A DNA stretch of 64,000 nucleotides, taken from positions 62,001 through 126,000 of the IMG/VR virus record IMGVR_UViG_3300020578_000006, one strand, 5' to 3'. Made by a program: the position numbers and the translations under genes. The notes beneath the pieces were generated by a model. It did not search any database. It saw only the letters and a program-made list of their open reading frames with translations, and had not been told where the DNA came from. Positions 3,117 through 32,177 of this stretch are shown one piece after another; the first letter of the stretch is position 1, and each line of letters starts with the position of its first letter.

Positions 3117-3121
3117 TATGT

Positions 3122-5216: not shown

Positions 5217-5413
5217 TTTACTTTCTTTTTATTTACTTTAATTAAAATACCTGTACCTGAGCTAGGGGCAATACCGGGGAGATTGGCGCCTTTAAACCCT
5301 TGAGGAAGCAAGCCACGATCATCTATATTTGGACCTGTGCCTTGACCCGGTCTATCAAAACTACCGTTGCCTAATCCTTCGTAAATTTTTTTAATAGAGT
5401 CGTCAAATTTCAT
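5189..5413 (-). CDS. Small Gly/Pro-rich hypothetical protein
   Basis: TAATG stop/start overlap with upstream fiber gene. Confidence 0.6.
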   Translation of the reverse strand: MKFDDSIKKIYEGLGNGSFDRPGQGTGPNIDDRGLLPQGFKGANLPGIAPSSGTGILIKVNKKKVNQRTPEKKV

Positions 5414-7747: not shown

Positions 7748-7961
7748 AAATTTTACAGTTGTTAGTGATGGTACTGTATTAAGGTGTATCGATGCTAATA
7801 CCGGTACACAATTTAACACTTATAGAATTAACGGCACGTTAATATCTGGCCCAGTTGTAACAGGGGATAGAGTTACTATAGTTGTAAGAAGATCTAATAC
7901 AAATTTTGGCGAAGTACTTAAGCTTCCTTCTTTCATGCTTACATCAACTTTTCGCGGATAA
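7725..7961 (+). CDS. Hypothetical protein
   Basis: ORF in co-oriented cluster. Confidence 0.55.
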   Translation: MLSPQKDKNFTVVSDGTVLRCIDANTGTQFNTYRINGTLISGPVVTGDRVTIVVRRSNTNFGEVLKLPSFMLTSTFRG

Positions 7962-7965
7962 TACG

Positions 7966-7993
7966 TTGATATCTAATTAACTAATGTTATTAT
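7966..7993 (+). promoter_or_regulatory. Sigma70-like early/middle promoter
   Basis: TTGATA-N16-TATTAT with TG extension, 6 nt before ATG 8000. Confidence 0.6.
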
Positions 7994-7999
7994 CTAAGC

Positions 8000-8488
8000 A
8001 TGGAGAATATGCTAGATGTAACGTTAGCGGAACAGCAGCCGCAACTAGATTATCCATTAATTAAATCTGATTTTCCAGATTCGTTTTTTGCAGGATATAT
8101 TATAAAAAATCGTTATGATGAGGAAAGACTTAACATAACAAAAACTTATAACACAGAAAGATTTTCATTTGCCACTAATAACGGGACTTATAAACTTTAC
8201 GGGTTATTAAAGCAAGCTTCTCCAAACCATAAACTAGTTTCTAGTTTAAACTCTAGAAAAACCATTACTATTGGGGAATATAGTGGCCTATTAAATGCTT
8301 GTGGATTATCTTGTCTTTCTTGCTTCTTACACTTTTCCCCTGGCCTGTATCCTGTTGATAATAACTTTTCATCTCATTTCTTTCCTGAGATAGACGACAC
8401 TTTTCAAGAAACAAAAAATAATATACCATCTTTTCAGCAGGTGGGAAATATTTATATTTTTGCTCTCATAAATCATCATAAAAATTAA
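8000..8488 (+). CDS. Hypothetical protein
   Basis: ORF with sigma70-like promoter directly upstream. Confidence 0.65.
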   Translation: MENMLDVTLAEQQPQLDYPLIKSDFPDSFFAGYIIKNRYDEERLNITKTYNTERFSFATNNGTYKLYGLLKQASPNHKLVSSLNSRKTITIGEYSGLLNACGLSCLSCFLHFSPGLYPVDNNFSSHFFPEIDDTFQETKNNIPSFQQVGNIYIFALINHHKN

Positions 8489-8551
8489 TTTTTTTTTTTC
8501 TTGAAAAAAGAAGGAACTTGCTTGTAATAAATATAAAATAATTTTTGTGAT

Positions 8552-10810
8552 ATGAATAATCAGATCTTTGTAAAAAAACGTAATGGAAATGCAGAAAAAT
8601 TTGATATTGAAAAAATTCACAGAGTAATCAGATGGTCAATTGAAGGGTTAGACGGGGTAAGCCTATCGGATATAGAAATAAACGCCAAGCTCAATATGGT
8701 GCAAAATGTTACCACTAAAGAAATTCATCAAAGTCTTATTGAAGCAGCTTCTAACCTTATTTCAGTAGAATCACCTAACTATCAGTATGTTGCTTCTAGA
8801 CTATTAAACTATCAGTTACGAAAAGACGTTTGGGGAGGCAAACACGCTCCAAGATTGTTAGATATGATTTATGGTGGAATTAGAAGAAAGATTTATGACC
8901 CTTCTATTATAGAAAAATATACAGAAGACGAAATTAATAAAATGGGTGAGTTTATTGATCATGATAGAGATTTTATTTTTACATATGCAGGTATTAAGCA
9001 GCTGTGTGACAAATATTTAATTAAAAATAGAATATCAGGTACTATTTTTGAAACTCCTCAATTTGCTTATATTCTAATTGCTGCATATGCTTTTGTTAAT
9101 TATAATCCTGAGGATAGGTTAATATACATTAAAAGATTTTACGATGCTATTTCTAAGCATAAAATTAATCTACCAACACCAATTATGGCCGGGGTTAGAA
9201 CAGTATCAAGAGGGTACGCGAGCTGCTGCTTAATTGGTGTAGATGATACAAAAGAATCTATTACTGCTTCCGGTACTGCAGTATCTTTAGCCACGGCTAG
9301 TAGGTGTGGTATTGGTATAGATATTTCTCGTGTCCGGGCAATGGGCACCCCGGTTAATGGTGGTTCAGTTGTGCATACAGGGGTTATCCCCTTTTTAAAG
9401 ATATTCGAAGCATCGGTTAAAGCGTGGCAGCAAAATTCTATAAGAGGAGGTTCCGCTACTGTTAATATACAGTGGTGGCATTACGAGATTGAGGATGTAG
9501 TTGTATTAAAGAATAATGCTGGTACTGATGATAACAGAGTCAGAAAATTAGACTATACTGTCGGAATGTCAAAACTATTTTATGACAGGGTTATAAAAAA
9601 TGAAAACGTAACATTATTTTCACCCAACGAAGTTCCTCACCTTTGGGGAGCATGGGGAACACCTGGTTTTGATAAAATATATGCAGAATGTGAGCAAGAT
9701 AAGAAAATTAAATTTAAAAAGAAGATTTCTGCAAGAAAGCTATTTTCACTTATAATTAAAGAAAGAGTAGAAACCGGTAGAATATATATTTTAAACGTCG
9801 ATACGGCAAACGAACACGTTGCATGGCTAGATCAAGTCACCATGTCAAATCTGTGCACAGAAATTATTCACCCTTATATTCCTTTAAAAGATTTTCATGA
9901 TCAGGAAGCGGAAATAGGAATGTGTATTTTATCAGCAGTGAATATGTTAGAAATTAAGAATTGGAATGAATTAGAAAAGGTGTGTGAGTTAATAGTTAGA
10001 TTTTTAGATGAAATTATAGATGTACAAGATTATTTTAATAAAGCTGCAGAAAATTTTGCTAAGCACCGACGTAGCCTAGGCATAGGTATTACAAACTTGG
10101 CTGCGTTTTTAGCTAAAAACGACGTAAAATACACTTCTAGTAAAGCTCTTCCAATAATTGATGAATGGATGGAGCATTTTCAATACTATCTTTTAAAAGC
10201 TAGTTTGACTCTTGCAAAAGAAAAAGGTAAATGTGAAAAATTTGATCGAACAAAGTATTCTAAGGGCATACTACCTATAGATACTTTTAAGAAAAACACT
10301 ACAGAGATTGTTAAGAGAAAACTATCACTAGATTGGGGTACATTAAGAGAGGAAATTAAAAAACACGGCTTAAGACACAGCACAGTTTCAGCCATAATGC
10401 CTTGTGAATCTAGTTCCGTTATTCAAAATTCTACTAATGGGGTAGAGCCTATTCGCTCACTCATTACCTACAAAATGTCTAAGATGGGTAAATTGCCTGT
10501 ACTGGTTCCAGGCATAGGGAAATATGATCAAAATTATGAGTTAGCTTTTAGTCTACCAGATAATACAGGTCTTATTAATCTTAACGCCGTAATGCAAAAA
10601 TATATAGACATGGCTATTTCTACTAACATATACTATAATTACAGTCATTATGATGGCCACACTTTACCAGATGCTAAAGTAATGAAAGAAATTATGTATG
10701 CATATAGCATGGGTTTGATTAGTTTGTATTATAACAATACAGATGATGGTGATAAGGAGCAGTTAATTACAAAAGAAGACTCTTGTTCTAGTGGGGCATG
10801 TAAACTATGA
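8552..10810 (+). CDS. nrdA: Ribonucleotide reductase class Ia alpha subunit with ATP cone
   Basis: ATP cone VKKRNGNAEKFD, PTPIMAG, ASCCL, NLCTE active site, C-terminal CSSGAC. Confidence 0.97.
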   Translation: MNNQIFVKKRNGNAEKFDIEKIHRVIRWSIEGLDGVSLSDIEINAKLNMVQNVTTKEIHQSLIEAASNLISVESPNYQYVASRLLNYQLRKDVWGGKHAPRLLDMIYGGIRRKIYDPSIIEKYTEDEINKMGEFIDHDRDFIFTYAGIKQLCDKYLIKNRISGTIFETPQFAYILIAAYAFVNYNPEDRLIYIKRFYDAISKHKINLPTPIMAGVRTVSRGYASCCLIGVDDTKESITASGTAVSLATASRCGIGIDISRVRAMGTPVNGGSVVHTGVIPFLKIFEASVKAWQQNSIRGGSATVNIQWWHYEIEDVVVLKNNAGTDDNRVRKLDYTVGMSKLFYDRVIKNENVTLFSPNEVPHLWGAWGTPGFDKIYAECEQDKKIKFKKKISARKLFSLIIKERVETGRIYILNVDTANEHVAWLDQVTMSNLCTEIIHPYIPLKDFHDQEAEIGMCILSAVNMLEIKNWNELEKVCELIVRFLDEIIDVQDYFNKAAENFAKHRRSLGIGITNLAAFLAKNDVKYTSSKALPIIDEWMEHFQYYLLKASLTLAKEKGKCEKFDRTKYSKGILPIDTFKKNTTEIVKRKLSLDWGTLREEIKKHGLRHSTVSAIMPCESSSVIQNSTNGVEPIRSLITYKMSKMGKLPVLVPGIGKYDQNYELAFSLPDNTGLINLNAVMQKYIDMAISTNIYYNYSHYDGHTLPDAKVMKEIMYAYSMGLISLYYNNTDDGDKEQLITKEDSCSSGACKL

Positions 10811-11871
10811 AATCTGTATTAAATTTAAAAAACATCGATCACACTAAGCAGCCTTTATTTTTTGGGGAAGACTTAAATTTACAACGTTATGATAGATTTA
10901 AGTATCCGGTATTTTTTGAGTTATTCAAAAGACAAGAAGAATTTTTTTGGTGGCCTCATGAAATTTCCCTGCAAAAAGATAGAGCTGATTATAAAGATCT
11001 AACACCGGAAGAAAGATTTGTGTTTGATACAAATTTAAAGTTTCAAACATTAGGTGATAGTATGCTATCTAGATCTATACACTCGTTAAAAGACTATGTT
11101 TCTAGCCCGGAACTAGAAATATGTATGAACACCTGGCAAAGGTTTGAAGGGATCCATAGCTACAGCTATAGCTATCTTCTCAACAACGTACATCCAGATG
11201 CATCTAAATTTTTTGATAGTATAATGGATGATAAAGAAATAGTAAGTAGAGCAGAACTAATTCGTAAAAATTACGATAAAATCTTAGGTGGGGAAGATAA
11301 AAAAGATGTTAAGGAAAAGATTTTTGACTGCATTCTAGCAGTCAATGTAATGGAAGGACTAGTGTTCTATGTTAGTTTTGCCTGTTCATTTTACTTTGGG
11401 TACAGAGGTAAAATGGAAGGAAATGCTAAAATTATTAAGTTTATTCAAAGAGATGAAGCTCAACACTTTGCTATAACTCAAAATCTTATTAAAATTCTTC
11501 GAGATGAAGACAAAGAAGGGTTTACATCAACCGTAAAAAAGAATGAAGATAAGATTTATGCTATATATGAACAAGCAACAAAAAATGAAATCGAATGGGC
11601 ACAATATCTTTTTAGTAAAAGTTCATTATTAGGTTTAAATGCTGAGGTCTTAGGGTCATATGCAAAATGGCTTTGTGATAATAGACTACGGTCTCTCGGT
11701 TACAAAAAAGTCTTTAATCAAAAAGAAAATCCAATTGCAGGTTGGTTGGACAGTTATCTAGACAGCAGTAAAGTCCAAGTAGCCCCACAGGAGGCAGAAA
11801 TAGGTGCATACAAAATTGCGGCGCGCGATACAACGATTACAGAAGACGTTTTCGACGACATTAAGTTGTAA
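10807..11871 (+). CDS. nrdB: Ribonucleotide reductase class Ia beta subunit
   Basis: FWWPHE, QTLGDS, EGIHSYSY (radical Tyr), MEGLVFYVSFA, RDEAQH, VAPQE..AY. Confidence 0.96.
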   Translation: MKSVLNLKNIDHTKQPLFFGEDLNLQRYDRFKYPVFFELFKRQEEFFWWPHEISLQKDRADYKDLTPEERFVFDTNLKFQTLGDSMLSRSIHSLKDYVSSPELEICMNTWQRFEGIHSYSYSYLLNNVHPDASKFFDSIMDDKEIVSRAELIRKNYDKILGGEDKKDVKEKIFDCILAVNVMEGLVFYVSFACSFYFGYRGKMEGNAKIIKFIQRDEAQHFAITQNLIKILRDEDKEGFTSTVKKNEDKIYAIYEQATKNEIEWAQYLFSKSSLLGLNAEVLGSYAKWLCDNRLRSLGYKKVFNQKENPIAGWLDSYLDSSKVQVAPQEAEIGAYKIAARDTTITEDVFDDIKL

Positions 11872-16732: not shown

Positions 16733-17539
16733 ATGAAAGTTTCTCATGAGACCCCTATTTCACTGTTAGATTATTCTAGAGATTACAATGATTTTGACTA
16801 TTGTTTAGTACATTTATTAGATAAACACCCTGATTACAAGGAGTTTTATAAGACAGCAAGACCTATTTACAATCGAGAAGTACTTCTAGACAATTCTATA
16901 TTTGAATTAGGCAAAGCATTTGACGCAGAGGCTTTCTATAAAGCAGCTTTAGAACTAGAACCTAATATGTTCATAGTTCCAGATGAACTGGAAGATATGA
17001 CCGGTACGATACAAAGCTTTAAAAGCTTTACAAACAAAATGCAAGATTTAAAAAACACCTTTCTAACCAAGGCCATTGGTGCTGTGCAGGGTAAAAACTG
17101 GCAAGAGTTAACCGAGTGTTATAAGTTTATATCTGATAACGCAGATATGGTTGCAATAAGTTTTGATTTTAGTTATTACCAGGTAACAGGTCGCGGTTGG
17201 CACCATTTAGAGCGTTGGTGTTCGGGTCGTCAGCGCTTTATTCAAGATTTAATAAATAATGGTCTATGGAGGTGGGATAAGCCTCATCATTTGTTGGGAT
17301 GCTCACTAGCAAAAGAATTTCGTTACTATGTCGATAGAGGTATTCACAATATTGTGTCTTGTGATACTAGCAATCCAATTGTTGCCGCTATTCATGAAAT
17401 AAAGTATGATGCGGATTATGGGCTAGACACTAAACCTTCTACTAAGCTTGCAGATCTGATTAGTCATGAATTTACACCTGAACAATTAGAGATGGTTAAG
17501 TACAATACTACAATGTTTAAGAAAATTATTCGTAGATGA
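16733..17539 (+). CDS. dpdA: TGT-fold deazaguanine transglycosylase-like protein (DpdA family, probably DpdA3-type)
   Basis: TGT-like motif order LLDNS, IVPD, AVQG, HHLLG, SCDTS with both candidate catalytic Asp; in operon with queF. Confidence 0.7.
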   Translation: MKVSHETPISLLDYSRDYNDFDYCLVHLLDKHPDYKEFYKTARPIYNREVLLDNSIFELGKAFDAEAFYKAALELEPNMFIVPDELEDMTGTIQSFKSFTNKMQDLKNTFLTKAIGAVQGKNWQELTECYKFISDNADMVAISFDFSYYQVTGRGWHHLERWCSGRQRFIQDLINNGLWRWDKPHHLLGCSLAKEFRYYVDRGIHNIVSCDTSNPIVAAIHEIKYDADYGLDTKPSTKLADLISHEFTPEQLEMVKYNTTMFKKIIRR

Positions 17540-18105
17540 GACCCTGGGTAGCATTTTTCTCTCAAACAGGAACAGAGATTCATAATTTAAGCAATGAAAT
17601 AGGGGTGTATCCTGATGCTATCATTACAAATAATCCTACTATATCTAAGATTAATTCTGCTTTAAGATATGTAACAGAGTTTAGAACCAATAAACTAAAT
17701 CGAGAAATATTGCACACACTTACTTCTAAGCCAACAGTAGAAGAATATGAAAATATTTTAAGTAAATTTAAGAACCCTATACTAACTTTACACGGTTATT
17801 TAAGAATTATACCAAAACAAATTTGTGAAAAGTATGAAACTTACAATCTACACCCGGGATTAATAGACAAATATCCAGAGTTGAAAGGGTTTAACCCTCA
17901 AGAGCGTGCCTACAGGGATAACTACAAGCTAGCCGGTTGTGTTATTCACAAAGTAACACCAGAAGTTGATGAAGGAGAGATTTTAATGAGCCAAGGCATT
18001 AGTATAGAGGGGTTAACTCTTAATGAGGTCTATGAAAAATTACACGATACGGCTTTTGATCTGTGGAAAAGTTTTTTTTCCGCTTATAATGTTTTAAAGG
18101 GCTAA
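17536..18105 (+). CDS. PurN-like 10-formyl-THF formyltransferase (DpdN-like)
   Basis: FFSQTGT, LHGYLRII, NLHP (catalytic N,H), GCVIHKVTPEVDEG (catalytic D). Confidence 0.85.
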   Translation: MRPWVAFFSQTGTEIHNLSNEIGVYPDAIITNNPTISKINSALRYVTEFRTNKLNREILHTLTSKPTVEEYENILSKFKNPILTLHGYLRIIPKQICEKYETYNLHPGLIDKYPELKGFNPQERAYRDNYKLAGCVIHKVTPEVDEGEILMSQGISIEGLTLNEVYEKLHDTAFDLWKSFFSAYNVLKG

Positions 18106-18106
18106 T

Positions 18107-19072
18107 ATGGACGTTTCTTTACATTATAAAAATGTTTTTTTAAAGCCTAATTTCAATTCTGTTAAGTCGAGAAAAGAAATTGACACACATGTACAGTTTT
18201 GTGATCGGGTTTTCAGGTTACCTGTTATACCCGCTAACATGAAATGTTGTGTAGACTATGAAACTTGTCAGATGTTAGATAAAAACAACTACTTTTATAT
18301 AATGCATAGATTTGATATAGACATTTTAAACTTTGTTAAGTATGCAAATTTGCAGAACTTTCATAATGTTTCAATTAGTATCGGTATACAGGATAAAGAT
18401 AGGCACATTATTAACGAATTATCACATATTTCTCAGCTTGGTAGGTTAGATTTCATAACTATTGACGTTGCCCACGGTCATCACTCTAAGGTTTGTGGTC
18501 AAATTAAGTTTATTAAAGATAGACTCCCAGCAGTTAGAGTAATTGCGGGTAATGTAGCATCGTATAAGGGGGTAGAATATTTAAGAGACTCTGGAGCAGA
18601 CGCCGTAAAGGTAGGTATTGGTGGTGGTTATGCGTGTACTACTAAGGATAAAACAGGATTTACCCATCCTATGTTTAGTTGTATAATGGAATGTGCCCAA
18701 GACAACAATTTACCTGTTATCGCCGATGGTGGTATACGCAATAACGGTGATATTTCTAAAGCTATTGTTGCAGGAGCTACAATGGTAATGTGTGGTTCTA
18801 TATTTGCTGCATGTTCAGATAGCCCAGCCCCAATAGTTAAGGATTCCTCCGGGCATAGATACAAACAATACTACGGCTCAGCAAGTATTCACAATAAAAT
18901 TGAAAAAAGAAATATTGAAGGTACAATGAAGCTTATGGAAGCTGATACAACAACCTATTTAGAGAAGCTAGAGGAAATTGAACAAGATTTACAGAGTGCA
19001 ATAAGCTACGCAGGTGGTTGCAATCTTAAAGCTCTTAACCTACATAATGTATCTTACGGGGTAAGAATGTAA
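18107..19072 (+). CDS. guaC: GMP reductase (short, Bacillus-type)
   Basis: LPVIPANM, YFYIMHRF, TIDVAHGH, KVGIGGGYACTTK (catalytic Cys), ADGGIR, YGSAS, EQDLQSAISYAGG. Confidence 0.92.
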   Translation: MDVSLHYKNVFLKPNFNSVKSRKEIDTHVQFCDRVFRLPVIPANMKCCVDYETCQMLDKNNYFYIMHRFDIDILNFVKYANLQNFHNVSISIGIQDKDRHIINELSHISQLGRLDFITIDVAHGHHSKVCGQIKFIKDRLPAVRVIAGNVASYKGVEYLRDSGADAVKVGIGGGYACTTKDKTGFTHPMFSCIMECAQDNNLPVIADGGIRNNGDISKAIVAGATMVMCGSIFAACSDSPAPIVKDSSGHRYKQYYGSASIHNKIEKRNIEGTMKLMEADTTTYLEKLEEIEQDLQSAISYAGGCNLKALNLHNVSYGVRM

Positions 19073-19416
19073 TGGGAGAAGATTATATTAAAATTGTAGA
19101 GTCCACGTATCCAGAGACGTGTGAAGAGTTTAAAAAAATACAGAAAGAGCAATATGAAGTTTTTTGTAAGAAGCAGTTTGATTATGGGCCCCACAATATT
19201 AGTCTTGGCTCAGATCTTCACAAAAAAGAAGACATAATAGCGTCTATATCAGCAATTGTAGTAAGGTTAAACGACAAAATTCAACGGCTTATTAATATGG
19301 TTTTAAGAAAAAAAACATTTGAAGCGGCAAATGAGCCAATTTTTGATGCTTTTAGCGATACCTCTGTATATTGTATTATTGCAGAAATAGTTAAAAGAAA
19401 AAAGTGGTGTAAGTAG
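19072..19416 (+). CDS. Nucleotide modification associated domain 1 (Nmad1/DUF1599; all-alpha MazG-like)
   Basis: KKQFDYG, RLNDKIQRL, E.I.DAFSD...Y. Confidence 0.75.
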   Translation: MGEDYIKIVESTYPETCEEFKKIQKEQYEVFCKKQFDYGPHNISLGSDLHKKEDIIASISAIVVRLNDKIQRLINMVLRKKTFEAANEPIFDAFSDTSVYCIIAEIVKRKKWCK

Positions 19417-19439
19417 TAGTTGTAGTTATAATAGAGTAA

Positions 19440-20024
19440 GTGAATATTACTTTTACTGGGCCGCAGTGTTCGGGTAAGACTACTTTGCTCAAGCAAATGA
19501 AGCAGACTAGAGGTATTATGGATCAGTTTTTTTATATTGAAGAAGTTACTAGATTAGTAAAGAGGGAGTTTAATGTTAGGATAAATGAAGAAGGTGCAAA
19601 CGATATAACTCAATTGTTAATTTTAAATAAGGAACTAGAGAATTTATTTAAATACGATTATGAACTTTGGCCGGGATGTAAAGGTAATGTACATGATAGA
19701 TGCCTACTAGATGGTTTGGTATTTACAGAATATTTTTATGATAAAAAACTTGTAAGTCAGCAAATCTGGTCACAAGCGTTAAACTATTGGAATCGTTTTT
19801 ATCATAAATACGATATTATATTTTATCCCGATCCCCATGAAATAAAATTAGTCGATGACGGTGAGAGAAGTGTTGACGTAGATTTTAGAAATAATATTAT
19901 AGACAAGTATGAGAATTACTATCTAGATCAATTTCAATGGAAAGATAAAGTTGTAAGACTGAAAGGAACAGTAGAAGAGAGAATAGGGATGATTAAAAGT
20001 ATTATAGATTTTTATACAAAGTAG
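19440..20024 (+). CDS. P-loop nucleotide kinase (AAA_28/NadR-like; putative dNMP kinase)
   Basis: ITFTGPQCSGKTT Walker A, HDRCLLD, DDGER. Confidence 0.75.
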   Translation: MNITFTGPQCSGKTTLLKQMKQTRGIMDQFFYIEEVTRLVKREFNVRINEEGANDITQLLILNKELENLFKYDYELWPGCKGNVHDRCLLDGLVFTEYFYDKKLVSQQIWSQALNYWNRFYHKYDIIFYPDPHEIKLVDDGERSVDVDFRNNIIDKYENYYLDQFQWKDKVVRLKGTVEERIGMIKSIIDFYTK

Positions 20025-20039: not shown

Positions 20040-20957
20040 ATGAGCAATACCATTTTAGATAATAGCAATATTTCAAAGCATCTCGGTAAAATAACCGGTT
20101 ATAAATCAACATATGACCCGACGTTGTTGGTAAGAGAGCCTAGAATTAACAATAGAAAGCATTTAGGAATTACAGATGAGGATGTTCCGTTTGGTGGTTA
20201 TGATATTTGGAATGCTTATGAAGTTTCCTGCTTAACAAAAGAGGGTATGCCTATTGCTGCTATAGCTAAGATTGTTTACCCGGCTAAAAACAAATACATC
20301 GTAGAGTCAAAGTCGATAAAGCTGTATATGAATTCGTTTAATATGCAAAAGTTTGAAGGAAATATTATTTCTATTTTAATGCAACTTCAAGATACGATTG
20401 CATCTGATCTTTCTAAGCTTTTAGAAACTGACGTCAAGGTATATGTAAGATCTACCAAATCAGTAGATGATGGTTTGTATTATCCACCGGTCTTTTCAAA
20501 TAAAGACTACCCGACGTTAGAGAATTTTATTGATGTAACTACTATTAAAGCGCCTTTTTACACAGAAAATCCCGATATTTTGAGTGCTGAAAAAATTAAT
20601 GAATCTAAAGTACAAAGATTCCACTCCGCATTATTAAAAAGTAATTGCAGAGTTACTTCTCAACCTGATTGGGGAGATGTTTACATTCACTACAAGGGTA
20701 AATATGAAATTAATCCAACTTCTCTTTTACAATATATTGTTTCTTTTAGAGATGAATGTCATTTTCACGAAGAGATTTGTGAAACTATTTATATGAGAAT
20801 TTTTCGAAAGTTTTTTCCCGAAGAGCTAGTTGTTAGCTGTTTATATGTAAGACGTGGTGGTATTGATATCAATCCAACAAGGTCGAGTAATCATAGTCTT
20901 TTAGACAAATCGTTAATTGACGAGTTTAAATATTTTACAAAAACGGTCAGACAGTAA
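20040..20957 (+). CDS. queF: NADPH-dependent preQ0 (7-cyano-7-deazaguanine) reductase, long bimodular type
   Basis: DIWNAYE, ESKSIKLYMNSF (QueF motif), catalytic CRVTSQPDWG, FHEEICE, RRGGIDINP. Confidence 0.93.
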   Translation: MSNTILDNSNISKHLGKITGYKSTYDPTLLVREPRINNRKHLGITDEDVPFGGYDIWNAYEVSCLTKEGMPIAAIAKIVYPAKNKYIVESKSIKLYMNSFNMQKFEGNIISILMQLQDTIASDLSKLLETDVKVYVRSTKSVDDGLYYPPVFSNKDYPTLENFIDVTTIKAPFYTENPDILSAEKINESKVQRFHSALLKSNCRVTSQPDWGDVYIHYKGKYEINPTSLLQYIVSFRDECHFHEEICETIYMRIFRKFFPEELVVSCLYVRRGGIDINPTRSSNHSLLDKSLIDEFKYFTKTVRQ

Positions 20958-24290: not shown

Positions 24291-27200
24291 GTGGCTGACC
24301 GTAATGTATTAATATCTCCGGGTGAAGGTTATATATTTTTCGATAGGAGCAATACTGGCTCTTCGACAAAATATGCAGGGGTTTCTGCCGATCTTAGCGT
24401 ACAAATCCAATATAATGATCTTGGTGGGTTAGAGTTTAGTACACCTGCTACTAACAATTCAACAGTTTCTATAAGTGGTGGAAATATCGTAGCTAATAGA
24501 AATATTACCGGGTTTACCATTTTTGAGAATCACTTAAATACAAATAGTGATGACTGGGCATCAGTTTATTCTTCAGTTCAAACAAATTCATCTGATTGGA
24601 ATGGAGGCGGAAGCCTTTATACAGTAGTTACAGAAAATAGTGCAAACTGGAACAGCGTTTATACTTCTGTAAGTGAAACTAGTGCTGACTGGGATTCAAC
24701 TTACACATCGGTCTCCGAAACATCGGCTGACTGGGATAGTACATATACATCGGTTTCAGAGACAAGCGCTGATTGGGATTCAACGTATACATCGGTCTCC
24801 GAAACATCAGCTGACTGGGATAGTACATATACATCGGTATCTGAAACATCGGCTGATTGGGATAGTACTTACACTTCAGTTTCAGAGACGAGTGCTGACT
24901 GGGATTCAACTTATACCTCCGTTAGTGAAACATCAGCTGACTGGGACAGTACATATACTTCTGTTTCAGAAACATCGGCTGACTGGGATTCAACTTATAC
25001 CTCCGTTAGTGAAACCAGTGCTGATTGGGATATTACATATACTTCTGTAAGCGAAACATCAGCTGACTGGGATAGTACGTATACTTCTGTTTCAGAAACA
25101 TCGGCTGACTGGGATAGTACGTATACTTCTGTTTCAGAAACATCTGCTGATTGGGATAGTACCTATACATCGGTATCTGAAACATCAGCTGATTGGGATT
25201 CGACTTATACTTCCGTAAGCTTAAATAGCGCCGATTGGGATAGTACATATACTTCTGTTTCAGAAACATCAGCTGATTGGGATTCGACTTATACTTCCGT
25301 AAGCTTAAATAGCGCCGATTGGGATAGTACATATACTTCTGTTTCAGAAACATCTGCTGATTGGGATAGTACATATAGTTCAGTTAGCCTAGTAAGTGCC
25401 GATTGGGACAGTTCAATTTACGACATTTATGGTACAACACACCAAATAACCGTTGTAACAGCAGGTACAAATAACAGAGATAATAGCGTTACTTTAAGTT
25501 TCCCGACAAGTGTATTTTTCCCAGGTAGTGTTAGTATAGCAGGTAACCTAACAATCTCTGGATCTGCCGCACAAATAGATGTAGATCACTTAGTAGTTAA
25601 AGATAATATAATTTATTTTGCAGAAGATAACCCAGCAAATGTTTTAGATATCGGATGGGTTGGCGCATTTACAGAAATTGGCGATGATGCTGGGTACCAA
25701 CATACAGGTTTGATTAGAAGAGCAGGCCAAGGCCGCCCTGGTACATGGACATTATTCTCTGGGCTTACAACAGAACCTGCATCTGCTGCAAATATTAATT
25801 GGGATGATTATTATTTTACAATAGACACTCTAAGAGCTAACCTATCTGGTACAGTGTTAGTACCTGGTGGCGGGTCTTCATTTGACTGGGATAGTGTATA
25901 TGCTAATGTTCAAGCAAATTCAGCTGGTTGGAGCGGAGGAGGAAGCCTTTATACAGTAGTTACAGAAAATAGTGCAAACTGGAACAGCGTTTATACATCA
26001 GTAAGTGAGACTAGCGCTGACTGGGATTCAACTTACACATCGGTCTCCGAAACATCGGCTGACTGGGATAGTACCTATACATCGGTTTCACAAACATCTG
26101 CTGATTGGGATAGTACCTATACTTCTGTAAGTGAGACTTCAGCTGATTGGGATAGTACCTATACATCAGTAAGTGAAACATCAGCTGACTGGGATTCAAC
26201 TTATACTTCCGTTAGCGAGACCAGCGCCGATTGGGATAGCACATACACATCTGTAAGCGAAACATCGGCTGATTGGGATTCAACCTACACTTCTGTTAGT
26301 GAAACCAGTGCTGATTGGGATAGCACTTACACCTCAGTAAGTGAGACCAGTGCTGACTGGGATTCAACCTATACATCAGTAAGTGAGACCAGCGCCGATT
26401 GGGATTCGACTTATACTTCTGTAAGCTTAAATAGCGCCGATTGGGACAGTACATACACATCAGTAAGTGAGACCAGCGCCGATTGGGATTCGACTTATAC
26501 TTCTGTAAGCTTAAATAGCGCCGATTGGGACAGTACATACACATCAGTAAGTGAGACCAGCGCCGATTGGGATTCGACTTATACTTCTGTAAGCTTAAAT
26601 AGCGCCGATTGGGACAGTACATACACATCAGTAAGCGAAACATCAGCTGACTGGGATTCAACCTATACATCAGTTTCACAAACATCTGCCGATTGGGATA
26701 GTGTCTATACATCGATGTCACTTAATAGTAGTTATTGGCTCGATATATCTGAAGCTAGTACAGAATTCTTAAAGGTATCTGGTGGTACTATTATAGAGGT
26801 TGGTGGTGAAGGTGGCTCGTTAGTCATAACAAATGATTTGACTGTCGATCCAACTAATCATGTATTGTTTGTTGATAAGTCACTTCAAAGAGTAGGTATA
26901 CTAAATTCAACACCTGATCGCGCTCTACACGTTAATGGAGATATCGAAGGATCTATTGGTTACTTTACACATATTGCAGCCGGCACAAAGTCATTCTATA
27001 TCAAACACCCTATTGATAGCAACAAACATCTACAATACGGATCATTGGAGTCTCCTTATCACGGTATAAGACTGACTGGTGAAGCAGAAATTACTGGCTC
27101 TACTGCAAAAATCGTTCTACCTTCTTATGTCTATGCTTTAGTACATGATAGTAATCTCAATGTTCAATTGACGAACTTCAAACACAAAAAACAACTCTGG

Positions 27201-27350
27201 GTGGACGATATCGTAATAGATACTAATACAAAAGAAAGTTACTTTGTAGTTAAGACCTCTAAAGATCTGTTTAGCAATAAAGCTTATAAGTTCTTCTGGT
27301 CCTTCACTGCCATTCGAAAGGATATTCCACCCCTAGTAGTAGAGGTGTAA
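24291..27350 (+). CDS. Long fiber protein with two 14-aa repeat stalks and C-terminal chaperone-like domain
   Basis: WDSTYTSVSETSAD arrays; C-terminal KSFYIKHP...YGSLESPYHG shared with 21568..24249. Confidence 0.7.
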   Translation: MADRNVLISPGEGYIFFDRSNTGSSTKYAGVSADLSVQIQYNDLGGLEFSTPATNNSTVSISGGNIVANRNITGFTIFENHLNTNSDDWASVYSSVQTNSSDWNGGGSLYTVVTENSANWNSVYTSVSETSADWDSTYTSVSETSADWDSTYTSVSETSADWDSTYTSVSETSADWDSTYTSVSETSADWDSTYTSVSETSADWDSTYTSVSETSADWDSTYTSVSETSADWDSTYTSVSETSADWDITYTSVSETSADWDSTYTSVSETSADWDSTYTSVSETSADWDSTYTSVSETSADWDSTYTSVSLNSADWDSTYTSVSETSADWDSTYTSVSLNSADWDSTYTSVSETSADWDSTYSSVSLVSADWDSSIYDIYGTTHQITVVTAGTNNRDNSVTLSFPTSVFFPGSVSIAGNLTISGSAAQIDVDHLVVKDNIIYFAEDNPANVLDIGWVGAFTEIGDDAGYQHTGLIRRAGQGRPGTWTLFSGLTTEPASAANINWDDYYFTIDTLRANLSGTVLVPGGGSSFDWDSVYANVQANSAGWSGGGSLYTVVTENSANWNSVYTSVSETSADWDSTYTSVSETSADWDSTYTSVSQTSADWDSTYTSVSETSADWDSTYTSVSETSADWDSTYTSVSETSADWDSTYTSVSETSADWDSTYTSVSETSADWDSTYTSVSETSADWDSTYTSVSETSADWDSTYTSVSLNSADWDSTYTSVSETSADWDSTYTSVSLNSADWDSTYTSVSETSADWDSTYTSVSLNSADWDSTYTSVSETSADWDSTYTSVSQTSADWDSVYTSMSLNSSYWLDISEASTEFLKVSGGTIIEVGGEGGSLVITNDLTVDPTNHVLFVDKSLQRVGILNSTPDRALHVNGDIEGSIGYFTHIAAGTKSFYIKHPIDSNKHLQYGSLESPYHGIRLTGEAEITGSTAKIVLPSYVYALVHDSNLNVQLTNFKHKKQLWVDDIVIDTNTKESYFVVKTSKDLFSNKAYKFFWSFTAIRKDIPPLVVEV
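24648..25406 (+). repeat. Coding tandem repeat, 42-bp unit, 18 periods (block 1)
   Basis: Trp codons at 24648 and 25404 are 756 nt = 18 x 42 apart. Confidence 0.95.
25980..26738 (+). repeat. Coding tandem repeat, 42-bp unit, 18 periods (block 2)
   Basis: Trp codons at 25980 and 26736 are 756 nt = 18 x 42 apart. Confidence 0.95.
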
Positions 27351-27980: not shown

Positions 27981-30900
27981 ATGGCAAACCCTACATTTAA
28001 CACATTAATAGCGCCTAATTCTGGTTTAATTTCTTTTAGTAATGATCCAACTGGTAGTTCTAATTTGCCTTCGCTTTCTAGTTCTGCACGTATTGTTTAT
28101 ACAGCAGGCGGTGGACTAACAATTACCAGTAAAGTCTCTTCAATGGAGAAATTTGCCGTTGAAGGTAGACTGGGTACTCTTTTTACTGTAACAGATGCTG
28201 TTTCCGGTGCTTTATTTCAACTTAGAGATGTTACTGGTTTTCCTATAGTAGAGTTTTTAGATAATGGTGACCTTGTAACCATAGGCAGTATAACCGCGGT
28301 TGAGGGTAATAGCCAGGAATGGAGCAGCGCATATACTACCGTAAAAGCAAATAGTGCTTCTTGGGAGGAATCTGCAGAGATAATACCCACTGTAACAAAT
28401 TATCTTTCCACTAACAATGTATTAATGTTATCTGCTACCATAATGGATTCATTAAGCGCAAGAGACTTGTTTTACATTAATCGCACTTTAATAAGAACCA
28501 ATAATCAAACTAACGTCTTCATTGGCAATAGTACTACAGGAAATGATAATGCCGAAGGCAATCATAATTTTGCATTTGGGTTAAGTGCAGGCAATGCATT
28601 GACCATCGGCGGTAGCAACAATTTCTTGGGGTACCAAGCTGGCCGTTGCAACTGCACAGGCAATGACAACAATTTCTTTGGGAGAGAAGCTGGCCGTTGC
28701 AACACCGCAGGCAATTTCAACAATTTCTTTGGGAGAGAAGCTGGCCTTTGCAACACCACAGGCAGTTACAACAATTTCTTGGGATTCCAAGCTGGCCGTT
28801 GCAACACCACAGGCACTCGCAACAATTTCTTGGGATACCAAGCTGGCCTTTGCAACACCACAGGCAATCGCAACAATTTCTTGGGATTTAATGCTGGCCG
28901 TAGCAACACCACAGGCACTTTCAACAATTTCATTGGATATGGAGCTGGTTTTTGCAACATCACAGGCCGTTACAACAATTTCTTGGGATACCAAGCTGGC
29001 CGTTGCAACACCACAGGCCGTTTCAACAATTTCTTTGGTAGACTTGCAGGATTCACTAACACCATTGGCTCCAACAATACCATCATTGGCAATAATGCTA
29101 ATGTGGCCACAAACAGCTTAAGTGGTGTTATAGTTTTGGGTACTGGGGCTATTGCCACTCAAACCAATCAAATCATACTTTCCAGTGCTGATATTTCCAT
29201 AAGAACCTTAAGAGGTACTGCTGCGGGACCCAACGTCTTCATTGGCAATAATACCACCGGAAATGATAATGCCACAGGCAATCATAATTTTGCATTTGGA
29301 TTGAGTGCAGGCAATGCATTAACGTCGGGGACCAGTAATGTATTTATTGGCAGTTGTGCAGGTAGAGTTAACACCACAGGCAATTTTAACAATTTCTTGG
29401 GAAATAATGCTGGCCGTTGCAACTGCACAGGCAGTTTCAACAATTTCTTGGGACCAAATGCTGGCTTTTGCAACACCACAGGCAGTGGCAACAATTTCTT
29501 GGGATTCCAGGCTGGCTATTGCAACTGCACAGGCAGTAGCAACAATTTCTTGGGATACAGAGCTGGATTTTTCAACACCACAGGCAGTTACAACAATTTC
29601 TTTGGACCAAATGCTGGCTTTTGCAACACCACAGGCAGTTGCAACAATTTCTTGGGAAATACTGCTGGCCGTAGCAACTGCACAGGCAGTAGCAACAATT
29701 TCTTGGGATATGGAGCTGGATTTTTCAACACCACAGGCAGTTACAACAATTTCTTTGGACCAAATGCTGGCCGTTGCAACTGCACAGGCAGTTTCAACAA
29801 TTTCTTGGGACCAAATGCTGGCTTTTGCAACACCACAGGCAGTGGCAACAATTTCTTGGGATTCCAGGCTGGCTATTGCAACTGCACAGGCAATGACAAC
29901 AATTTCTTAGGATTTAATGCTGGCCGTAACAACACCACAGGCAGTTACAACAATTTCTTGGGACGTAATGCTGGTCGTCGCAACACCACTGGGTGCGCTA
30001 ACCAAGTTTTAGGGAGCTTTGGACTTTATAACAACACCACTGGTTGTGGCAACATTGCTTTAGGACCGGTTGCTGGTTTCAATAATGAAACTGGTTGCTT
30101 CAATTTATTCTTAGGAGGAGCTACTGGTTTCTGTCATTTAAGTGGTAATAATAATATTTTTGTTGGTAATGCTGCAGGATTTAATGATAAAGTAGGTTTC
30201 AATAACACTATAATTGGGTTAAGTGCTGGCGTGGCCAGCGTGTCTGGTACAAACAACATTATAGTTGGCTCATTTGCCAATGTTAGCACTGGTACACTGT
30301 CTGGTGTTATAGTTTTGGGTACTGGTGCTGTTGCCACTCAATCTAATCAAATCATACTTTCCAGTGCTGATATTTCCATAAGAACTTTGAGAGGTACCAA
30401 TGCCGGTCCCAACGTCTTCATTGGCAATAGTACTACAGGAAATGATAATGCCACAGGCAATCATAATTTTGCATTTGGATTGAGTGCAGGCAATGCATTG
30501 ACCACCGGCGGTTATAACAATTTCTTAGGAAATAATGCTGGTCGTAACAACACCTCAGGCAGTTTCAACAATTTCATTGGGAGAGAAGCTGGCCGTTGCA
30601 ACTGCACAGGCAGTAACAACAATTTCTTGGGATTAAATGCTGGCCGTTGCAACACCACAGGCAGTCGCAACAATTTCTTGGGATACAATGCTGGCCGTTG
30701 CAACACCACAGGCTGTAGCAACAATTTCTTAGGATTTAATGCTGGCCGTAACAACACCATAGGCAGTTGCAACAATTTCTTGGGACAAGAGGCTGGCTAT
30801 GGCAACTGCACAGGCAGTAACAACAATTTCTTGGGATTAAATGCTGGCCTTTGCAACTGCACAGGCAATAGCAACAATTTCATTGGACCAAATGCTGGCC

Positions 30901-32177
30901 GTTTCAACTGCACAGGCAGTTTCAACAATTTCTTTGGATATAGTGCTGGCCGTTGCAACACCACAGGCGGTAACAACAATTTCTTGGGATATGGAGCTGG
31001 CCGTTTCAACTGCACAGGCGGTAACAACAATTTCTTTGGATTAGCTGCTGGTTATAACATAGGCAGGTATGGTGCAGCCAGCCGCAATGTATTCATAGGC
31101 CAAGAAGCTGGCAGAGGTGAATATGATTCTAGCTATACACCAACTAATGTTTTTGTTAACAATAACGTGGCCATTGGTTACCGGGCTGGATTCAAATTAA
31201 AAGCCCATACCTACAATACCAATTATCACTATGCCACCCAACACAACATATTCATTGGTGAAAAAGCCGGTTACAATAGCACCACCGATAATTCATATGG
31301 CGCCGCTATACACAATATATTTTTAGGAAAATTTTCTGGGTTTTACAACACCACAGGCAATAACAACAATTTCTTTGGGAGAGAAGCTGGCTTTTGCAAC
31401 ACCATAGGCAATCACAACAATTTCTTGGGATACCAAGCTGGCCGTTTTAACTGCACAGGCAGTCGCAACAATTTCTTTGGATTAAATGCTGGTCTTAGCA
31501 ACACCACAGGCAGTTACAACAATTTCTTGGGACAAGAGGCTGGCTTTAGCAACTGCACAGGCAATCACAACAATTTCTTGGGATTCCAGGCTGGCTTTAG
31601 CAACTGCACAGGTTGTAACAACAATTTCTTGGGTAGACTTGCAGGATGCACTAACACCATTGGCTCCAACAATACCATCATTGGCAATAATGCTAATGTG
31701 GCCACAAACAGCTTAAGTGGGGTAGTAGTATTCGGTACTGGTGCTGTTGCCACTCAATCTAATCAATTAGTAATCGGTTCTTTGTCTACCCCGTTAACCG
31801 GTAACAGTATATTATATGGTAACTTAACTGTAACAGATTACTTAAGTGCATCTAGGTATGCCGATAGTACTAATTGGTCTGGTAATAGAGAGCTAAAAAC
31901 AGTTAACTTTGATGCTGAACCATACCATCATTACCTTGTAGACACCACTTCTAGTGCAGTTATAGCAACATTACCTCTAAATCCGCAGATAGGCACAGTT
32001 ATACACTTCTCAGATAGGCTTTTAACGTTAAATTCTGGGTGGAACACCAATAATCTAATATTAAATAGAAATAGCATGATGATTCAAGGTTTGGCCGAAG
32101 ATTTAGTATGTGATAGGGCTGGAGTTACCTTCGCTCTCACGTATGTAGGCCATCCAATAGAGTGGAGAGTTGACTAA
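27981..32177 (+). CDS. Tail fiber/adhesin with Cys-rich 17-aa beta-roll repeats
   Basis: GxxNNFLGxxAGxCNTT repeats in three segments; C-terminal YLVDTT...TLPLNP...NNLILNRN module. Confidence 0.7.
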   Translation: MANPTFNTLIAPNSGLISFSNDPTGSSNLPSLSSSARIVYTAGGGLTITSKVSSMEKFAVEGRLGTLFTVTDAVSGALFQLRDVTGFPIVEFLDNGDLVTIGSITAVEGNSQEWSSAYTTVKANSASWEESAEIIPTVTNYLSTNNVLMLSATIMDSLSARDLFYINRTLIRTNNQTNVFIGNSTTGNDNAEGNHNFAFGLSAGNALTIGGSNNFLGYQAGRCNCTGNDNNFFGREAGRCNTAGNFNNFFGREAGLCNTTGSYNNFLGFQAGRCNTTGTRNNFLGYQAGLCNTTGNRNNFLGFNAGRSNTTGTFNNFIGYGAGFCNITGRYNNFLGYQAGRCNTTGRFNNFFGRLAGFTNTIGSNNTIIGNNANVATNSLSGVIVLGTGAIATQTNQIILSSADISIRTLRGTAAGPNVFIGNNTTGNDNATGNHNFAFGLSAGNALTSGTSNVFIGSCAGRVNTTGNFNNFLGNNAGRCNCTGSFNNFLGPNAGFCNTTGSGNNFLGFQAGYCNCTGSSNNFLGYRAGFFNTTGSYNNFFGPNAGFCNTTGSCNNFLGNTAGRSNCTGSSNNFLGYGAGFFNTTGSYNNFFGPNAGRCNCTGSFNNFLGPNAGFCNTTGSGNNFLGFQAGYCNCTGNDNNFLGFNAGRNNTTGSYNNFLGRNAGRRNTTGCANQVLGSFGLYNNTTGCGNIALGPVAGFNNETGCFNLFLGGATGFCHLSGNNNIFVGNAAGFNDKVGFNNTIIGLSAGVASVSGTNNIIVGSFANVSTGTLSGVIVLGTGAVATQSNQIILSSADISIRTLRGTNAGPNVFIGNSTTGNDNATGNHNFAFGLSAGNALTTGGYNNFLGNNAGRNNTSGSFNNFIGREAGRCNCTGSNNNFLGLNAGRCNTTGSRNNFLGYNAGRCNTTGCSNNFLGFNAGRNNTIGSCNNFLGQEAGYGNCTGSNNNFLGLNAGLCNCTGNSNNFIGPNAGRFNCTGSFNNFFGYSAGRCNTTGGNNNFLGYGAGRFNCTGGNNNFFGLAAGYNIGRYGAASRNVFIGQEAGRGEYDSSYTPTNVFVNNNVAIGYRAGFKLKAHTYNTNYHYATQHNIFIGEKAGYNSTTDNSYGAAIHNIFLGKFSGFYNTTGNNNNFFGREAGFCNTIGNHNNFLGYQAGRFNCTGSRNNFFGLNAGLSNTTGSYNNFLGQEAGFSNCTGNHNNFLGFQAGFSNCTGCNNNFLGRLAGCTNTIGSNNTIIGNNANVATNSLSGVVVFGTGAVATQSNQLVIGSLSTPLTGNSILYGNLTVTDYLSASRYADSTNWSGNRELKTVNFDAEPYHHYLVDTTSSAVIATLPLNPQIGTVIHFSDRLLTLNSGWNTNNLILNRNSMMIQGLAEDLVCDRAGVTFALTYVGHPIEWRVD
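28560..31670 (+). repeat. Coding 51-bp repeat arrays with higher-order segmental duplication
   Basis: 17-aa unit; exact 130-bp duplication 29406-29535 / 29763-29892; linker module repeated near 29060-29330 and 30300-30500. Confidence 0.9.

Follow-up and report, generated by a model that had tools for sequence, protein, structure and literature searches.

A T4-like phage from lake-water metagenomes carries a GMP reductase homologue (GuaC), a small Nmad1-like helical protein and a nucleoside-kinase-like gene inside a putative operon for the replacement of guanine in DNA by a 7-deazaguanine. The kinase is found in every related operon with enough flanking sequence to be informative (69 of 69), and the Nmad1-type slot is filled in 52 of 53 of those that also carry the formyltransferase, which hints that the replacement is prepared at the level of free nucleotides, whereas GuaC is an optional addition. 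The window analysed is a 64,000-nt stretch (positions 62,001 to 126,000) of the 229.7-kb IMG/VR record IMGVR_UViG_3300020578_000006. Megablast of the operon against 50,697 phage records gave no match, so that no cultured close relative exists.

Six tightly packed genes on the + strand read DpdA3 (16733–17539), DpdN (17536–18105), GuaC (18107–19072), an Nmad1-like protein (19072–19416), a P-loop kinase (19440–20024) and QueF (20040–20957). An earlier note had placed the middle three genes between the formyltransferase and queF with overlapping or near-abutting junctions, and this observation is confirmed by the sequence. The DpdN stop TAA is followed by one base and then the GuaC ATG, the GuaC stop and the next ATG overlap as TAATG, a 23-nt spacer precedes the GTG start of the kinase, and a 15-nt spacer precedes the QueF ATG. 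The tight junctions are conserved in 56 related loci, with a median gap of 1 nt between DpdN and GuaC and of -1 nt between GuaC and Nmad1, and the arrangement is therefore not a chance juxtaposition. Promoter and terminator scans gave nothing above shuffled expectation, and no RNA run was listed for the GuaC–Nmad1 stretch, so operon status rests on spacing and conservation alone.

The first gene encodes a DpdA3-type guanine transglycosylase homologue (268 aa), which by tblastn is 41.5% identical to the ‘DNA guanine transglycosylase’ of Flavobacterium phage immuto_2-6A and 46% to gp056 of Campylobacter phage CP220. It matches phrog_19058 at 1.5e-55, its neighbours in a protein atlas are DpdA/TGT clusters, and the motifs LDNSxFEL, VPD, HLLGC and DTSNP are invariant in an alignment of the family. 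DpdN, a PurN-like formyltransferase (189 aa; Pfam Formyl_trans_N, 4.6e-15), is 47.8% identical to immuto YP_010114479, named DpdN in PMC10516641. The last gene encodes a bimodular QueF (305 aa), the preQ0 to preQ1 nitrile reductase, with Pfam matches to QueF_N (4.7e-34) and QueF (4.7e-21), and a TIGR03138 score of 266 bits against a cut-off of 293. The combination of DpdA3, QueF and DpdN thus identifies a DpdA3-type module of the fdPreQ1 kind, although none of FolE, QueD, QueE and QueC was found among the ORFs scanned in this 64-kb portion of the contig. As 100% of G is fdPreQ1 in immuto_2-6A (PMC10516641), near-complete replacement is a reasonable expectation for the uncultured phage.

GuaC (321 aa) is an intact type-2 GMP reductase homologue, with the IMPDH/GMPR domain (PF00478, 5e-53) covering residues 5–303 and no CBS subdomain. 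The best solved structure is that of Bacillus anthracis GMP reductase (1YPF), aligned over residues 6–311 at 9e-71. GMP reductases carry a catalytic Cys in a GxGxGxxCxT loop, a Thr two residues later and a conserved Glu (Cys186, Thr188 and Glu289 in human GMPR2). In the phage protein the loop GIGGGYACTTKDKTGF holds Cys177 and Thr179, and the NIEG motif holds Glu271; these align with the B. anthracis enzyme and are invariant in seven phage homologues. The protein falls below the curated equivalog cut-offs, scoring 330.9 bits against 344 for the NCBIfam GMP reductase model PRK05458 (NF003966) and 283.8 against 465.65 for TIGR01306, so the substrate is assigned by similarity only.

The 114-aa protein gave no Pfam hit even at an E-value of 10, but 17 of 22 family members hit PF07659 (DUF1599/Nmad1) below threshold, with a best E-value of 1.6e-4. 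Of 100 atlas hits, 78 were to DUF1599 clusters, with a score of 0.96 and 221–226 of 256 features shared, and one bacterial atlas cluster carries both MazG and DUF1599 annotations. None of its 139 relatives is annotated. The AF2 model is all-helical (pLDDT 90.8), but a Foldseek search against the PDB returned nothing with E below 1.7, the MazG-like entries 2OIE and 4QGP appearing only at about 6.5; a profile search against PDB sequences gave only a chance-level hit, and hhalign of the family against DUF5664 or an immuto PRA-PH protein gave probabilities below 1%. Residues D37, D68, E88, D92 and D96 and K/R positions are conserved, without a recognisable MazG EExxE motif. Nmad1 is not known to have any demonstrated enzymology, and the protein, a divergent Nmad1/DUF1599 member, is best regarded as a candidate nucleotide pyrophosphatase or partner of DpdN. 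Searches of PDB sequences with DUF5664-type proteins, the immuto hydrolase, the kinase as a single sequence and DpdA3 likewise found nothing useful.

The kinase (194 aa) matches Pfam AAA_28 (5.9e-15) and phrog_2107. The AF2 model, from a run restricted to IMG/VR sequences (pLDDT 89.2), has a predicted deoxynucleoside-kinase/NadR-RNK-like fold, with dCK, dAK, dNK, NadR and TMPK as the top Foldseek hits (E 4e-7, TM 0.6–0.7; probability 1.00 for dCK, dAK, dNK and NadR). A profile search aligned residues 3–172 to the NadR RNK domain 6GYE at 1.3e-3, with the P-loop and the E..R, DRx..D and DDGxR (LID) motifs matched. The thymidylate kinase label given by PHROGs and GenBank records was set aside, as the protein has no PF02223 or NCBIfam hit, the immuto homologue hits PF02223 only at E 0.004, and TMPK structures rank below the nucleoside kinases.

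Conservation of the module was examined in about 84 distinct related loci from viral metagenomes. The kinase and QueF follow DpdA3 in 69 of 69 loci with enough flank, and a kinase homologue also follows DpdA3 in CP220 and follows DpdN in immuto, two distant cultured lineages. A small pyrophosphatase-type gene lies beside DpdN in 52 of 53 loci, and in 0 of 16 loci without DpdN. This gene is Nmad1 or, in a sister clade, PF18909/DUF5664 in the same position, a family shown in vitro to hydrolyse dATP and dGTP to dNMP (PMC12884076). The link between this slot and DpdN rests on few independent events, however, with one change on the DpdA3 tree for DpdN and three for the slot. Fusion proteins of DpdA3 with DpdN, and of DpdN with Nmad1 (in three loci, L138, L140 and L144), were also found. 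An atlas cluster of 455-aa proteins with AAA_28 that resembles DpdA3 in structure prompted a search for a DpdA3–kinase fusion, but none was present among the 150 best DpdA3 representatives, and this stays a lead only.

GuaC behaves differently. Its co-occurrence with DpdA-like genes, which had been set beforehand as a test, holds in one sub-lineage only: it is present in 19 of 45 informative loci, absent within 10 kb of DpdA3 in the other 26, and absent from the immuto and Campylobacter DpdA3 phages, which still replace all G. Its state changes at least seven times on the DpdA3 tree, and it also changes position, sitting in sister phages directly after the small subunit of the class I ribonucleotide reductase (RNR), 3.7–4 kb upstream of DpdA3; in the window the large and small RNR subunits lie at 8552–11871 (+). 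Operon-type GuaCs form one clade, that is, one insertion event, and GuaC at 69% identity or more is always beside the module (38 of 38). In locus L156, a second, unrelated GMPR-family gene follows DpdA3–Nmad1. A Gpt-like 6-oxopurine phosphoribosyltransferase (3658–4134, +; 158 aa; Pfam Pribosyltran, 2.9e-11), which scores 67 bits against a cut-off of 138 for the xanthine PRTase model PRK09177, may salvage guanine or phosphoribosylate the deazaguanine base; a homologue lies beside FolE in immuto, and 7–9 kb upstream of DpdA3 in many loci.

What the analysis establishes is the gene identities, the conserved order DpdA3–DpdN–[Nmad1 or DUF5664]–kinase–QueF, the presence of the kinase next to DpdA3 in every sampled locus and in two distant cultured lineages, and the fusions; the catalytic activities, the extent of G replacement and the mechanism are inferred. 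In the explanation tentatively preferred, a module for replacing guanine by 7-(formylamino)methyl-7-deazaguanine would work on free nucleosides or nucleotides before replication. A pyrophosphatase-type protein (here Nmad1) would return dGTP and/or unformylated dPreQ1TP to the monophosphate, DpdA3 would swap guanine for preQ1 made by QueF, DpdN, a relative of an enzyme whose natural substrate carries a ribose-5-phosphate, would formylate the aminomethyl group, and the nucleoside-kinase-like enzyme would phosphorylate the product towards the triphosphate. GuaC would be a lineage-specific valve that reduces GMP to IMP, bleeding off guanine nucleotides no longer needed for DNA, including guanine displaced by the base swap and re-salvaged by the Gpt-like transferase, and passing the purine to the adenine branch. 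Besides the gene content, this view draws on the MazG-type PRA-PH gene two genes upstream of DpdA3 in immuto, the HD-plus-kinase fusion directly upstream in CP220, the precedent of a natural dNMP-level base swap (DmtZ), and the report that DpdA3 phages replace 100% of G whereas DpdA3 alone could not be made to work in E. coli (PMC10516641). Against it stand the published argument for post-replicative insertion, the weak assignment of Nmad1, the few independent events behind the link between its slot and DpdN, the absence of GuaC near DpdA3 in 26 of 45 loci and from the cultured DpdA3 phages, the single insertion event behind the operon-type GuaCs, the frequency of GuaC in large phages that have no DpdA3, and the fact that GMP reduction competes with the supply of GTP, the precursor of preQ1. 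Taken to its full extent, DpdA3 systems in general would be nucleotide-pool pathways rather than post-replicative DNA transglycosylase systems, with DpdA3 swapping guanine for preQ1 on a free deoxynucleoside or deoxynucleotide, the kinase as obligate neighbour phosphorylating the product, DpdN acting on a 5'-phosphorylated substrate as PurN does, Nmad1 or DUF5664 recycling triphosphates, and the Gpt-like transferase, with GuaC in some lineages, clearing displaced guanine; this is possible, but rather less likely than not.

The authors who defined DpdA3 proposed the opposite for all DpdA families (PMC10516641), namely that DNA is made with G, that DpdA3 then exchanges every G in DNA for preQ1, and that DpdN formylates it in DNA. 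In this view the P-loop protein would be an ATP-using helper, as DpdB is for bacterial DpdA, which needs this ATPase (PMC10164549), Nmad1 would be a helper domain of DpdN, and the Gpt-like transferase and GuaC would only dispose of the large amount of released guanine, which would explain their presence. DpdA3 has a TGT/DpdA fold whose known relatives act on polynucleotides, and the fusions fit two enzymes acting in succession on DNA equally well. However, the P-loop protein matches small-molecule nucleoside kinases in fold and motifs rather than a ParB-like ATPase, a dATP/dGTP diphosphohydrolase family member, MazG-type gene or HD phosphohydrolase beside DpdA3 would be pointless or harmful if dGTP were needed for replication, and DpdA3 alone failed in E. 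coli; this route is considered somewhat less likely than the preferred one. Less likely again, GuaC may be an ordinary auxiliary metabolic gene with which AT-rich large phages turn surplus guanine nucleotides from host RNA and DNA into IMP and then AMP, and which in one sub-lineage happened to move from behind the RNR genes into the neighbouring operon. GuaC homologues occur in many large phages without DpdA3 (phage G, Thermus phiYS40/TMA, Caulobacter Cr30, Xanthomonas and Stenotrophomonas jumbo phages, Lak and crAss-like phages), 361 IMG/VR stretches encode relatives, most of the 48–54% identical ones having no DpdA3 within 10 kb, and the window is AT-rich (31–38% GC around the operon). Yet once inserted, the position DpdN–GuaC–Nmad1 with its tight junctions is kept in all 56 loci that hold it, despite 70–76% protein identity, and the L156 insertion also speaks against this reading. 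Very unlikely is that the enzyme acts on a 7-deazaguanine nucleotide, removing the 2-amino group to give a 7-substituted 7-deazahypoxanthine in DNA. Support is only circumstantial: the position of the gene between the formyltransferase and Nmad1, its score just under the equivalog cut-off, a Tyr175 in the catalytic loop that is invariant in the phage clade where the B. anthracis enzyme has Lys, and the hypoxanthine-type base that can replace G in Campylobacter Fletcherviruses (PMC13091555). All residues that could be checked align with ordinary GMP reductases, and close relatives of the gene sit outside the operon or in phages without DpdA3.

The interpretation in the earlier note is thus partly supported. 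Its three gene calls hold, and its analogy with aminoadenine phages, which deplete the canonical nucleotide with hydrolases, is strengthened by the DUF5664 substitution. Its suggestion that the kinase phosphorylates a deazaguanine dNMP is not the best-fitting substrate call, as the protein resembles nucleoside kinases (dCK, dAK, NadR-RNK) rather than dNMP kinases, and pre-replicative replacement, which it took to be implied, is favoured by gene content without being proven. No paper was found linking GMP reductase, or this kinase, to deazaguanine DNA, but GuaC is a real, optional purine-pool gene and most likely an accessory valve, rather than the key novel component the note had suspected. 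DpdA3 phages are abundant, the family holding 1573 protein clusters at 50% identity and at least 574 stretches in IMG/VR, and are the only deazaguanine phages that replace every G, yet DpdA3 has never been made to work in the laboratory. The comparative data identify parts probably missing from those attempts, namely the kinase and the pyrophosphatase-type slot tied, and sometimes fused, to the formyltransferase, and bring the timing of G replacement within reach of simple enzyme assays; a nucleotide-level route would supply enzymes for making fully deazaguanine-substituted DNA in vitro.

The closest known system is that of immuto_2-6A, in which DpdA3, DpdN, an AAA_28 kinase homologue and bimodular QueF lie in the same order, with a Gpt-like PRTase and a MazG-superfamily gene nearby. 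It differs in having no GuaC and no Nmad1 in the operon but a PRA-PH-type gene upstream, its proteins are only 34–48% identical, and the paper describing it (PMC10516641) never discusses the kinase, the PRTase or any pyrophosphatase. In Campylobacter Firehammervirus CP220, where dADG replaces 100% of G, the DpdA3 homologue is followed directly by a homologue of the same kinase and preceded by a phosphohydrolase, but the latter is an HD domain fused to a second P-loop kinase, no DpdN, QueF or GuaC lies in the neighbourhood, and the final base is different. The 2-aminoadenine (Z) phages, with DatZ, MazZ, DUF5664/DutZ, DmtZ and PurZ (PMC8342488, PMC12884076), encode a small all-helical dNTP pyrophosphatase next to the base-changing enzyme, the DUF5664 family being shared with a sister clade of the present module, and DmtZ shows that phages can swap a base on a dNMP; the base (A to Z) and the folds of the base-changing enzymes are different, and no GMP reductase is reported there. 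The inferred pathway follows the logic of T4 hydroxymethylcytosine synthesis, in which the canonical dNTP is hydrolysed to dNMP (dCTPase gp56), modified as the monophosphate (dCMP hydroxymethylase gp42) and re-phosphorylated by a phage kinase (dNMP kinase gp1), and while the present phage is T4-like in its head genes, none of the proteins are homologous as far as tested. GuaC itself aligns over its full length with cellular type-2 GMP reductase from B. anthracis, with the catalytic Cys/Thr loop and Glu motif conserved, and differs in being phage-encoded, in scoring just below the equivalog cut-off, and in being embedded in a DNA-modification operon.

The + strand between 16733 and 20957 carries six closely packed ORFs, the first of which (16733–17539, 268 aa) encodes a DpdA3-type guanine transglycosylase homologue, 41.5% identical to that of immuto_2-6A and 46% identical to CP220 gp056; phages immuto (Flavobacterium) and CP220 (Campylobacter) represent the two lineages in which Cui, Hutinet et al. 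defined the DpdA3 subfamily (PMC10516641). This is followed by DpdN (17536–18105, 189 aa), a PurN-like formyltransferase 47.8% identical to immuto DpdN, and by GuaC (18107–19072, 321 aa). GuaC matches the Pfam IMPDH family at 5e-53, scores 330.9 bits against the NCBIfam model PRK05458, for which the cut-off is 344, and has the Bacillus anthracis GMP reductase 1YPF as its best solved relative (9e-71), with the catalytic Cys/Thr loop and the Glu motif in place. An Nmad1-like protein (19072–19416, 114 aa), an AAA_28 P-loop protein (19440–20024, 194 aa) and a bimodular QueF (20040–20957, 305 aa) complete the set. The close or overlapping junctions described in the earlier note were confirmed: TAAtATG between DpdN and GuaC, an overlapping TAATG after GuaC, then spacers of 23 nt and 15 nt. 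The observation underlying the note is confirmed.

The remainder of the window is that of a T4-like phage, with a Gp23 capsid protein, an S77 prohead protease and gp25, as well as a class I ribonucleotide reductase (RNR) and a Gpt-like purine phosphoribosyltransferase upstream of the operon. The same DNA is present in at least 20 lake-water metagenomes, and the window appears to be part of a 229.7-kb IMG/VR contig. Among the head genes, next to the prohead protease, lies a gene with a TnsA-like endonuclease domain (39014–39469, − strand), which is probably a mobile endonuclease. A tail-fibre-like protein (5413–6801, − strand) combines a phage tail collar domain with the N-terminal domain of the Bordetella-phage major tropism determinant Mtd, and two very large ORFs (24291–27350 and 27981–32177) contain long in-frame tandem arrays (24659–26713 and 28616–31633) with periods of 42 nt (14 aa) and 51 nt (17 aa), and about 16 and 8–12 copies per array, also visible as periodic tblastn hits; these look like repetitive fibre-like proteins. 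Sugar-modifying genes are found at 306–2797 and 34760–35542, comprising two glycosyltransferases, a UDP-glucose/GDP-mannose dehydrogenase-like gene and a sulfotransferase.

The 114-aa protein has 139 relatives in a large protein collection, none of which is annotated. When 22 diverse members were scanned individually, 17 matched PF07659 (DUF1599, ‘nucleotide modification associated domain 1’) below threshold, with a best E-value of 1.6e-4, and its neighbours in a protein atlas are DUF1599 clusters at a score of 0.96. The AlphaFold model is confident and all-helical (pLDDT 90.8). The designation Nmad1 in the earlier note is therefore right at the level of a distant family member, whereas a MazG-like hydrolase is not shown: a fold search and two profile-profile comparisons gave nothing significant, and the canonical acidic motif is missing, although several acidic and basic residues are invariant.

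The predicted structure of the P-loop protein (pLDDT 89.2) matches human deoxycytidine kinase, Mycoplasma and Giardia deoxyadenosine kinases, Drosophila dNK and NadR, and only then thymidylate kinases (E 4e-7, TM 0.6–0.7). A profile of 13 homologues aligns over nearly its whole length with the ribosylnicotinamide kinase domain of NadR (E 1.3e-3), with matching P-loop, E..R, D..D and DDGxR motifs. On this basis it is a predicted small-molecule kinase, whose nearest characterised relatives phosphorylate nucleoside 5′-hydroxyls; the database label ‘thymidylate kinase’ is not supported by Pfam or NCBIfam searches.

To place the operon in context, loci were collected from IMG/VR in three scans, anchored on DpdA3 as a single sequence, on a DpdA3 alignment and on a GuaC alignment, and were scored by tblastn with the proteins of the window. 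This yielded 84 distinct DpdA3 loci, in which DpdA3 is 54–100% identical to that of the window. Among the 69 loci with at least 3.5 kb downstream, the kinase and QueF follow DpdA3 in 69 of 69, and in a clade without DpdN the order is simply DpdA3-kinase-QueF, with overlapping stop and start codons (median gap −7.5 nt). A homologue of the same kinase follows DpdA3 in CP220 and follows DpdN in immuto. Where DpdN is present, a small helical gene sits between it and the kinase in 52 of 53 loci, being Nmad1 in 43 and PF18909 in nine (E 1e-20 to 1e-24), while it is present in none of the 16 loci without DpdN. PF18909 is DUF5664, and the stand-alone protein of this family from Arthrobacter phage Wayne hydrolyses dATP and dGTP to the monophosphates (PMC12884076). 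The cultured DpdA3 phages also have a nucleotide phosphohydrolase beside DpdA3: in immuto a PRA-PH gene of the MazG superfamily, annotated as a ‘hydrolase’ (8279–8803 of its locus), lies two genes upstream, and in CP220 an HD phosphohydrolase fused to a second P-loop kinase of the AAA_33 type (7868–8899 of its locus) lies directly upstream.

Natural fusion proteins were also identified, including DpdA3-DpdN (447 aa, in the DpdA3 representatives P0245 and P0311) and DpdN-Nmad1 (about 302–309 aa, in three IMG/VR loci: L138, at 2200–3129 and 309 aa; L144, at 8919–9827; and L140). Other DpdA3 architectures (representatives P0264 and P0294) include a 586-aa protein with an unidentified 317-aa N-terminal extension, and a 475-aa protein whose C-terminal part looks by eye like a GIY-YIG-type homing endonuclease. 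On a DpdA3 tree the loss or gain of DpdN is a single event and the slot beside it changes type three times, so the co-occurrence counts do not represent many independent events, and the in-place replacement and the fusions are the stronger evidence. In two relatives that lack GuaC in the operon (L009, 10807–12390, and L011, 2662–5585), a tryptophan-halogenase-like flavin enzyme (PF04820, 2.3e-75) is inserted between DpdA3 and DpdN, accompanied in L011 by an asparagine-synthase-like amidotransferase, which may represent a further, undescribed derivatisation of the deazaguanine. DpdA3 is far more common than the few cultured examples suggest, with 1573 clusters at 50% identity (E up to 1e-3) and at least 574 IMG/VR stretches, together with a weak hit in the 53-kb Weizmannia phage Youna2.

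The distribution of GuaC is different. Every locus whose GuaC is at least 69% identical to that of the window lies beside the module (38 of 38), occupying the same position, DpdN-GuaC-Nmad1, in 34, and sitting directly after the RNR small subunit, 3.8 kb upstream, in four. Of the more distant GuaCs (48–54% identity), only seven lie within 10 kb of a DpdA3, always in the layout RNR-GuaC ... DpdA3, and the rest have no module gene nearby. Among the 45 DpdA3 loci with good flanks, 15 have GuaC in the operon, four have it upstream and 26 have none, all 19 positives falling in the DpdA3 identity band of 65% or more. On the GuaC tree the operon type is one well-supported clade whose sister holds the upstream type, whereas on the DpdA3 tree the GuaC state changes at least seven times. 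No Flavobacterium or Campylobacter phage record matched GuaC, in a tally covering the first word of every organism name with three or more records; immuto has four records and the Firehammerviruses 14 in that collection, and neither word appears. GuaC homologues do, however, occur in many large phages without DpdA3. One further locus, L156 (9977–12583), from a distant DpdA3 lineage, has the order DpdA3, Nmad1-like, then a very divergent IMPDH/GMPR-family gene (355 aa, with a short DUF5522 match at its N-terminus), the contig ending just after it. This gene is 28% identical, and its best model is type-1 GMP reductase at 129 bits against a cut-off of 397; it constitutes a second, independent insertion of this enzyme family at the same place.

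The most likely role of GuaC is the ordinary reaction, GMP to IMP, as inferred from sequence. In a phage that puts no guanine into its DNA, guanine nucleotides beyond those needed for RNA synthesis and preQ1 synthesis would be surplus, and each base swap, at whatever level it happens, would also release one guanine, which the Gpt-like transferase could return to GMP. GuaC would make the removal irreversible and pass the purine to the adenine branch, which suits a genome of 31–38% GC. The same logic explains GuaC in other AT-rich large phages, so that a generic role cannot be separated from a modification-specific one with these data. The drain of guanine nucleotides envisaged in the earlier note, if wholesale, has a cost, as GTP is the precursor of preQ1 (PMC10516641), and a change of substrate towards deazaguanine nucleotides is possible but has no support beyond gene position.

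Taken together, the interpretation offered in the note is partly supported. The kinase and the pyrophosphatase-type slot are conserved parts of DpdA3 modules, whereas GuaC, which the note suspected to be the novel component, is an accessory; what is new is the conserved DpdA3-kinase-pyrophosphatase architecture, into which GuaC was inserted in one lineage. No paper describing this architecture, or linking GMP reductase to deazaguanine phages, was found. The gene identities, the conserved order and the fusions are established by the sequence comparisons, while the activities of the encoded proteins and the stage at which guanine is replaced are inferred. Our reading agrees with the pre-replicative route inferred in the note, and disagrees with the proposal that all deazaguanine DNA modifications are post-replicative (PMC10516641), a study that does not mention the kinase or the phosphoribosyltransferase, and which reports that DpdA3 could not be made to work in E. 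coli. None of this is proof: the fusions fit a DNA-level assembly line equally well, bacterial DpdA needs an ATPase partner, and Nmad1 has no known activity.

The pre-replicative reading is favoured, but not proven, by gene content and by analogy with other systems. A dedicated, predicted small-molecule kinase is obligatory in these modules, and a putative nucleotide hydrolase of changing type recurs (Nmad1, DUF5664, PRA-PH, HD). DpdN's relative PurN acts on a ribose-5-phosphate-bearing amine, and fusion of DpdN to Nmad1 would fit a triphosphate-to-monophosphate step feeding the formyltransferase. DmtZ of the Z-genome phages shows that a phage enzyme can transfer deoxyribose-5-phosphate from a canonical dNMP to a new base. 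A dedicated kinase and a recurring nucleotide hydrolase are the hallmarks of pathways that prepare a modified dNTP before replication, namely the T4 hydroxymethylcytosine pathway and that of the Z-genome phages (PMC8342488, PMC12884076).
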